DNA from: Octopus bimaculoides
Lineage: Eukaryota
Direction of reading: 5' to 3'
Length of the DNA: 46,748 nucleotides
Assembly (NCBI RefSeq): GCF_001194135.2
Contig: NC_069001.1
Span: forward strand, 482,007 to 528,754
Below the pieces are notes generated by a model. The model made no database searches. It was not told where the DNA came from and was given only the letters and a program-made list of their open reading frames with translations. Each line of letters begins with the position of its first letter. Positions within the stretch are counted from its first letter, which is position 1. Shown here in pieces: positions 18,959-19,376 of the stretch. Position numbers and translations under genes: made by a program.

Positions 18959-19376
18959 TATATATATAGATAGATATACATCATATAGATAGATGGATAG
19001 ATAGATAGATATACACGTGTGTGCATATGTGTGTACAGAGAGGCAGAAAAAGAGAGAGAGAGAGGCATTGAATGAATAATAAGAAAATAACCAATCTCTA
19101 TCGACCAGTACACTTAAGTTCCTTTGCCTGAAACATTCCACTTTCTGTGGTCTTTACGGTTAATTGAAAATGGCACCATAGAATCAGTATGTGCCAATCT
19201 TTTTGGCAGAGAATAAATATTTATCATTTGCTAAGGAATACATCTGACCCTTTCATCTTGAAAGCTAAAGAGCTCCTCTGCCGACGGCTAAACGACGCTA
19301 TATATATATATGTGTATATGCATACATACATGCATTTATATATATATATATATATACACATACATATATGCATACA

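Follow-up and report, generated by a model that had tools for sequence, protein, structure and literature searches.

The window, as we call the whole stretch of Octopus bimaculoides DNA analysed here, spans 46,748 bases with ~36% G+C, is rich in microsatellites and is interrupted by eight N runs. Its right part holds the hinge/LBD exons of an NR2E-type receptor, and the DNA-binding-domain (DBD) exon of the same gene lies beyond the right end. The CpG content of the window changes at about 19.3 kb. To the right of this point extends a CpG-replete domain, which contains the 3' part of the NR2E-type gene and ~19 kb downstream of that gene, and to the left a CpG-depleted domain reaches to the first base. 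Copies of one SINE family, scattered over both domains, are listed with the other features in Table 1.

Table 1 Features located in the window, with the basis on which each was assigned
Feature	Position	Strand	Basis or detail
CpG-depleted domain	1..19281	.	Masked o/e, P(G given C) 0.042, seven SINE copies
SINE copy	1815..1952	+	Left, 0/5 CpG intact, nhmmer E 6.5e-26
SINE copy	4851..5052	-	Left, 1/9 CpG intact
SINE copy	5125..5336	-	Left, 0/8 CpG intact
SINE copy	5440..5552	+	Left, 1/5 CpG intact
SINE copy	6600..6744	+	Left, 1/4 CpG intact
SINE copy	15640..15802	+	Left, 0/8 CpG intact
SINE copy	17152..17328	-	Left, 0/9 CpG intact
Boundary zone	18874..20637	.	95% credible interval, single step; ML 19282, posterior median 19276
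15-N scaffold gap	18907..18921	.	Inside TA/CA microsatellite, ~360 bp left of ML step
CpG-replete domain	19282..46748	.	Masked o/e, 12 SINE copies, O. vulgaris comparison
Four-CpG cluster gCCGACGGctaaACGACGc	19282..19297	+	CpGs at 19282, 19285, 19293, 19296
SINE copy	22073..22266	-	Right, 6/9 CpG intact
SINE copy	40757..40955	-	Right, 8/9 CpG intact, best model match, E 2.4e-53
Further right-side SINE copies	21950, 24090, 25448, 26270, 26614, 26983, 29453, 34708, 42620, 43380		
NR2E-type last coding exon (LBD C-terminal part, then stop codon)	38603..38842	-	tblastn 100% to O. vulgaris P0002 residues 182-261; Pfam PF00104
NR2E LBD exon	39229..39390	-	Pfam + tblastn
NR2E LBD exon	40162..40356	-	Pfam + tblastn

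The NR2E-type gene and its surroundings

The LBD exons are 99% identical to an Octopus sinensis protein named 'photoreceptor-specific nuclear receptor-like' and match Pfam PF00104. Upstream of them on the minus strand lies a long ORF, at 40941-41849, with many His, Gln and Ala runs. Pfam returned no match for it, and it may either encode the hinge of the receptor or represent translated low-complexity intron. Judged by the comparison with Octopus vulgaris, the expected place of the orthologous hinge exon is within or close to the N gap at 42004-42474.

We aligned the window to O. vulgaris chromosome OX597834.1 and obtained a nucleotide identity of 82-94%. The O. vulgaris locus (OX597834.1 29876101-29926952, reversed) carries two copies of the NR2E 3' region, which corresponds to ~34-41 kb of the window. 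The copies lie ~34 kb apart, at positions 1-13721 and 28888-50809 of the reversed stretch, and are explained by tandem duplication or by an uncollapsed haplotype. In O. vulgaris, the annotated 261-aa model P0002 joins a DBD exon (locus 16823-17071) to the LBD exons of the second copy. Since P0002 does not contain the LBD exon matching window 40356-40162, the model is probably incomplete.

Several other elements were recorded along the window. Two short ORF fragments on the minus strand, at 30272-30337 and 35011-35097, carry motifs ('MWFLRRILRITWTDEVSNEEV', 'WLRHGLLKKETEELILAAQEQNLRTNSIK') that we take to be typical of LINE reverse-transcriptase C-terminal regions, and Pfam returned no family for these two LINE-like ORFs at E <= 0.01. 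On the left, a plus-strand run of ORFs at 8500-9350 (e.g. '...FPDLNSLDYSMWSVVEREV...') resembles what we presume to be a decayed Tc1/mariner-type transposase; for these ORFs, at 8.5-9.35 kb, Pfam again gave no family at E <= 0.01. The other long ORFs on the left look like translated microsatellite. A 69-bp inverted duplicate (27522-27590/32121-32189) shows 98.6% identity, well above any other repeat pair in the window, which indicates a recent event or an assembly artefact. A 77-bp stretch repeated with 100% identity at 7693-7769 and 7820-7896 flanks the 50-N gap at 7770-7819 and looks like an assembly or gap-closing artefact.

The CpG step near 19.3 kb

A sequence-only reading of the window had proposed a CpG-depletion boundary at 19200-19330, starting from by-eye counts of 4 CpGs in 1021-2040 and 38 in 25021-26040, and both counts proved exact when we recounted them. 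In 1-kb sliding windows, CpG observed/expected (o/e) ranged from 0.12 to 0.52, mostly ~0.2, up to 19 kb, and from ~0.55 to 1.3, mostly ~0.85, from 19.5 kb on in windows without N runs. We modelled the change as a step, each C before a called base being a Bernoulli trial for 'next base G'. The maximum-likelihood (ML) step in this probability, P(G given C), was placed at 19282, inside the proposed interval, with a rise from 0.042 on the left to 0.153 on the right. The gain from the step was an LLR of 141.8 nats, against a 95% permutation null of 5.4. The CpG contrast at these coordinates is thereby confirmed as real and far beyond chance.

Binary segmentation of the whole window yielded no other significant change point. 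A marginal one appeared at ~296 (p = 0.02), to the left of which the sequence is CpG-rich relative to the rest of the left block (8 CpGs in 1-296, P(G given C) 0.18 vs 0.041). The depleted domain may have its other edge here, or the signal may simply come from TACGTA-like low-complexity sequence. Inside the depleted block we observed two further CpG clusters, at 13901-14200 (10 CpGs/300 bp) and 15201-15620 (~13/420 bp), which are possibly younger insertions, constrained sequence or small unmethylated islands; the ORFs over both clusters had no protein match.

For the comparison of dinucleotides, tandem repeats were masked with TRF. On the left (1-19281) the masked o/e was 0.25 for CpG, 1.35 for TpG and 1.30 for CpA at a GC of 0.356, and on the right (19282-46748) the corresponding values were 0.90, 1.09 and 1.15 at a GC of 0.391. 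The depletion on the left survives the masking, and it is specific to CpG, with a reciprocal gain of TpG and CpA: all other dinucleotides were about equal on the two sides, GpC being 0.89 on the left and 0.96 on the right. Over the left 19 kb, about three quarters of the CpG sites have been lost to TpG/CpA.

The position of the step was further examined by computing its posterior with a flat prior, which gave the credible interval listed as the boundary zone in Table 1. The ML position within this zone is fixed by four CpGs lying within 16 bases at 19282..19297. A logistic ramp with a 10-90% width of ~2.2 kb, centred at ~19.9 kb, fitted 1.8 lnL better than the step, and P(G given C) is intermediate, 0.10, in 19282-20948, a shoulder that was non-significant as a change point in the binary segmentation. 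The return of CpGs at 19281-19299 noted in the sequence-only reading is contained in the interval, but calling it abrupt over-reads the four-CpG cluster, since a ramp of a few kb is allowed. The check for a gradual change also had a divided outcome: ramp widths of at least 13 kb were rejected, yet the step is not favoured over ramps of up to ~7 kb, all widths from 0 to ~7 kb being within 2 lnL of the best fit.

The scaffold gap beside the step raises the question of a misjoin, by which a methylated-type region would have been set next to an unmethylated-type one and the edge would be an assembly artefact. With the gap ~360 bp from the ML step, a step placed at 18907-18921 fits just 2.0 lnL worse than one at 19282, and 5.6% of the posterior mass lies at or left of the gap; moreover, the O. 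vulgaris locus sequence that we compared reaches window ~32.35 kb, short of the junction. Nevertheless, the 360 bp immediately right of the gap are still left-like (3 CpG at 51 C sites), and what follows them is the shoulder of P(G given C) 0.10 to 20.9 kb instead of an instant jump. The gap itself is small (15 N), with a TA/CA repeat on each flank. Of the eight gaps in the window, seven are located within or next to simple or tandem repeats, and at the seven gaps other than this one the composition does not shift. In addition, the two sides share their SINE family and their kinds of microsatellite, which indicates that both come from the same genome. Taken together, we regard a misjoin as very unlikely.

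CpG decay in repeats and in the O. vulgaris comparison

The sequence-only reading had also compared one SINE site between the two sides, and the six sites that it quoted were all found as described: GTTGAC or GTCAAC at 1877, 5255 and 6625, and GTCGAC at 21973, 22180 and 34770. One site in six SINE copies is weak evidence alone. We built an HMM of the SINE and searched the window with nhmmer, which returned 19 copies in all (7 left, 12 right), and CpG retention was scored at nine inferred ancestral CpG positions. On the left only 3 of 48 ancestral CpGs were kept, compared with 48 of 94 on the right (6% vs 51%; Fisher p = 3e-8), and 31 of the 48 left-hand sites now read TG or CA. Among the left copies, TG and CA are both present at one and the same SINE site, indicative of decay from CG on either strand and not of a TG- or CA-bearing subfamily.

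The divergence of the SINE copies from their consensus at non-CpG positions was 0.202 on the left and 0.261 on the right. The left copies, being less diverged, are therefore not older than the right ones. Taking (1-d)^2 as the neutral expectation for CpG survival, where d is the non-CpG divergence, we obtained 0.64 expected vs 0.06 observed on the left, and 0.55 expected vs 0.51 observed on the right. Compared with neutral survival, the right CpGs thus decay neutrally and the left ones about six times faster. Alignments of left against right repeats, made with no selection of sites, gave a similar picture: CG on the right faced TG or CA on the left in 31 cases and the reverse held in 2 (p = 1.3e-7), while the GpC control in the same alignments was flat (13 vs 9).

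These results bear directly on the possibility that CpG o/e merely follows the age or content of repeats, the left repeats being older than the right ones. The left SINEs are the less diverged (0.202 vs 0.261) and yet have lost 94% of their CpGs, the paired repeat alignments are asymmetric for CpG only, and the depletion is still present with tandem repeats masked. An explanation by repeat age therefore has next to no probability. CpG decay does not track repeat age, as the contrast of 6% vs 51% CpG kept and the 31:2 asymmetry demonstrate, and the proposal that deamination would account for the left-hand losses stands, the repeat-age alternative having failed.

We next turn to the right side, where the orthologous O. 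vulgaris stretch is also CpG-replete, with an o/e of 0.83. Differences of the type CpG to TpG/CpA between the two species amount to 14.9% on the right side, compared with 11.0% for the GpC control (ratio 1.35). This low ratio shows that the NR2E side is not CpG-hypermutable.

A regional process unrelated to methylation, such as GC-biased gene conversion, an isochore shift or selection keeping CpGs near a developmental regulator, could in principle raise CpG on one side. GC is indeed slightly higher on the right (0.391 vs 0.356), and developmental transcription-factor loci are CpG-rich in many animals. Against this, the two sides differ in CpG and its deamination products alone, GpC, CC/GG and the remaining dinucleotides being about equal, and by arithmetic on the masked composition the loss of CpG accounts for ~60% of the GC difference. 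The SINE CpGs on the right are kept at the neutral expectation (0.51 vs 0.55), with no over-retention, and the right-hand o/e of ~0.9 looks like the genome default. By our estimate, the 80.66 million CpGs counted in the O. bimaculoides genome (PMC9476566) imply, with its size and GC, a genome-wide o/e near 1. We thus consider such a process extremely unlikely.

Two specific forms of compositional boundary were rejected. An isochore/GC boundary, which would change every dinucleotide containing G or C, fails because the difference of 0.356 vs 0.391 is mostly CpG loss and GpC and CC/GG barely differ. A vertebrate-type CpG island, a CpG-enriched stretch of ~0.5-2 kb that usually marks a promoter within a globally depleted genome, fails as well: the replete side extends over at least 27 kb, its o/e of ~0.9 is not above expectation, and it contains no further change point. 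The vertebrate CpG islands and methylation valleys are similar in that an unmethylated, CpG-replete developmental-regulator region abuts CpG-depleted DNA. In vertebrates, however, depletion is the default of the genome and the island the exception, and the octopus shows the reverse, with a replete side of at least 27 kb that, in contrast to an island, is not enriched above expectation.

A probable edge of a germline-methylated domain

In the germline, 5mC deamination turns the CpGs of methylated DNA into TpG/CpA, and unmethylated DNA escapes this loss. From this mutational footprint we infer 5mC as the cause of the depletion, and the window very probably spans the border of an octopus genomic domain whose CpGs were long methylated in the germline. 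In 1 to ~19.3 kb, 5-methylcytosine would have been deaminated to thymine over many generations, converting CpG to TpG/CpA about six times faster than background substitution, and o/e would have fallen in this way to ~0.25. From ~19.3-20.6 kb rightward, CpGs would be unmethylated and decay at the background rate, with o/e staying at ~0.9. The depleted domain (1..19281) would accordingly be one that was germline-methylated for a long time and that reaches, or almost reaches, the left end of the window, and the replete domain (19282..46748) appears to be unmethylated in the germline. The earlier claim that the NR2E gene and its downstream 19 kb would be unmethylated gains support from this footprint, in the CpG-replete composition and in the ratio of 1.35 to the GpC control in the comparison with O. 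vulgaris.

In invertebrate mosaic methylomes, methylated blocks are overwhelmingly the bodies of constitutive genes, including their introns and passenger repeats. It is fairly probable that the depleted block is likewise the intron-dominated body of a constitutive transcription unit. We prefer the gene-body reading because published octopus methylomes show methylation on the introns and exons of broadly expressed genes. The coding exons of the unit would lie outside the window or be too short to detect, and the edge would be the end of that unit, either its TSS or its TTS. As a whole, a methylation-domain edge with a gene body as its left block is the explanation that we consider likely.

We searched for such a gene by way of its ORFs. 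From 1-20.5 kb we took the ORFs of at least 35 aa, leaving aside repeat-derived and low-complexity ones, and concatenated them to 4843 aa; a search of 5.8 billion proteins with this query yielded nothing at E <= 1e-3. The ORFs of 18.9-38.6 kb, including all of at least 22 aa around 18.92-19.32 kb, had no homologue in 5.8 billion proteins. A coding exon in 1-38.6 kb was thus not found by ORF protein searches, which are blind to exons in shorter ORFs and to genes absent from all annotations; the empty result is further bounded by the X-spaced concatenated query, run with no positive control. We also looked for intronic snoRNAs and boundary tRNA genes, and no Rfam family or tRNA was found in the window. 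The sequence-only reading had taken 1-19.2 kb for the body of an unannotated, broadly expressed gene, and the ORF searches returned no homologue to bear this out. Its suggestion that the edge coincides with the outermost exon candidate did not hold either, as the ORF over 19168-19320 is without a protein match.

The TA skew, (T-A)/(T+A), was -0.056 in 1-19281 and +0.029 in 19282-38599, each several SE from zero and heterogeneous. The opposite skews might reflect a transcription-coupled asymmetry. Since the plus-strand excess of A over T in the left block is weak and heterogeneous, a direction of transcription is not assignable from it. An AATAAA at ~19212 and a 'tttttggcag' at ~19201-19210 were considered as a poly(A) signal and a splice acceptor, respectively, and dismissed, because in DNA with such a high AT content we estimate about one chance occurrence of such motifs per kb.

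The empty searches also feed an alternative in which the footprint arose by the same mechanism and the depleted 19 kb are a methylated but non-coding transcription unit or intergenic block. The filtered ORFs of at least 35 aa in 1-20.5 kb have no protein homologue and the block shows no Rfam family; if the marginal change point at ~296 is real, the whole unit would lie inside the window and still be without a coding exon. However, methylated CpGs of the octopus are strongly enriched in introns and exons, with intergenic DNA and transposable elements (TEs) low (PMC9476566). The left-end signal consists of 8 CpGs in a region rich in TACGTA-like sequence, and the searches miss exons in ORFs shorter than 35 aa and genes that are unannotated everywhere. 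Octopus introns are long, and 19 kb without an exon would be unremarkable. We therefore regard a non-coding target as unlikely.

A more specific version holds that the block is a complete germline-methylated unit of ~19 kb, at ~0.3-19.3 kb, without any protein-coding exon. It is hinted at because the first 300 bp are marginally CpG-rich and the protein searches came back empty, and we consider it quite unlikely. If true, a ~19 kb methylation target, long non-coding or otherwise non-genic, would adjoin the regulatory landscape of a developmental nuclear-receptor gene. The block would then depart from the view that in the octopus it is expressed protein-coding genes whose bodies are marked by methylation, and the NR2E regulatory domain might end at its edge.

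The preferred reading, a domain edge with a gene body on its left, can be set beside systems that are already described. In Ciona intestinalis, CpG depletion is reportedly confined to methylated transcription units, as Suzuki et al. are said to have described in Genome Research in 2007. There, long methylated and unmethylated domains alternate, the methylated ones being CpG-depleted and lying on transcription units, much as proposed here. Ciona belongs, however, to another phylum, and its boundaries were reportedly mapped by methylation-sensitive enzymes and bisulfite and not from sequence.

For O. bimaculoides itself, the methylome and its machinery (DNMT1/UHRF1) are documented (Macchi, Edsinger & Sadler 2022, PMC9476566). 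Less than 10% of the CpGs carry methylation, clustered on introns and exons within a subset of genes whose expression is high and broad (PMC9476566). Methylation is low in TEs and in intergenic DNA, 17,586 genes lack it, and tissues do not differ in the pattern (PMC9476566). One class, MP2, is methylated through the gene body and past the TTS but not at the TSS (PMC9476566). The sequence-only reading had drawn on the mosaic gene-body methylation of molluscs; in O. bimaculoides such a mosaic has been measured, and the pattern of the window matches this published methylome. There, contiguous methylated blocks cover a subset of transcription units together with their introns and passenger repeats and adjoin unmethylated DNA with tissue-specific genes, an arrangement that the window would share, and the NR2E-type gene of the window behaves like the unmethylated class MP4 (PMC9476566). 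The published work, in contrast to ours, measured 5mC directly and across the genome (PMC9476566); here a footprint of CpG loss was followed at one locus, and no gene is tied to the block.

Bimodal CpG o/e serves as a proxy for germline methylation in molluscs (oyster; Gavery & Roberts 2010, PMC2996979) and in insects (honeybee, PMC2975444). In these animals, as in our interpretation of the window, low CpG o/e goes with historically methylated, broadly expressed genes and high CpG o/e with unmethylated, inducible or tissue-specific ones (PMC2996979, PMC2975444). The oyster and honeybee studies differ in that transcripts were scored per gene, whereas we located a change point by its position along genomic DNA, with repeats as an internal control.

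A CpG step of this type is commonplace in the genomes of octopus and other invertebrates and belongs to a well-described phenomenon. Its value is practical rather than conceptual, and knowledge of invertebrate methylation is unchanged by it. An edge of a germline-methylation domain in the octopus genome can be located to within 1-2 kb from sequence alone, with interspersed SINE copies as an internal control by which CpG decay driven by methylation is told apart from the effect of sequence age. The depleted block, at least 19 kb long, predicts a constitutively expressed transcription unit where none has been detected, which could help annotation. The CpG-replete NR2E locus, in turn, predicts tissue-restricted expression, and an NR2E-type regulator is presumably tissue-restricted.
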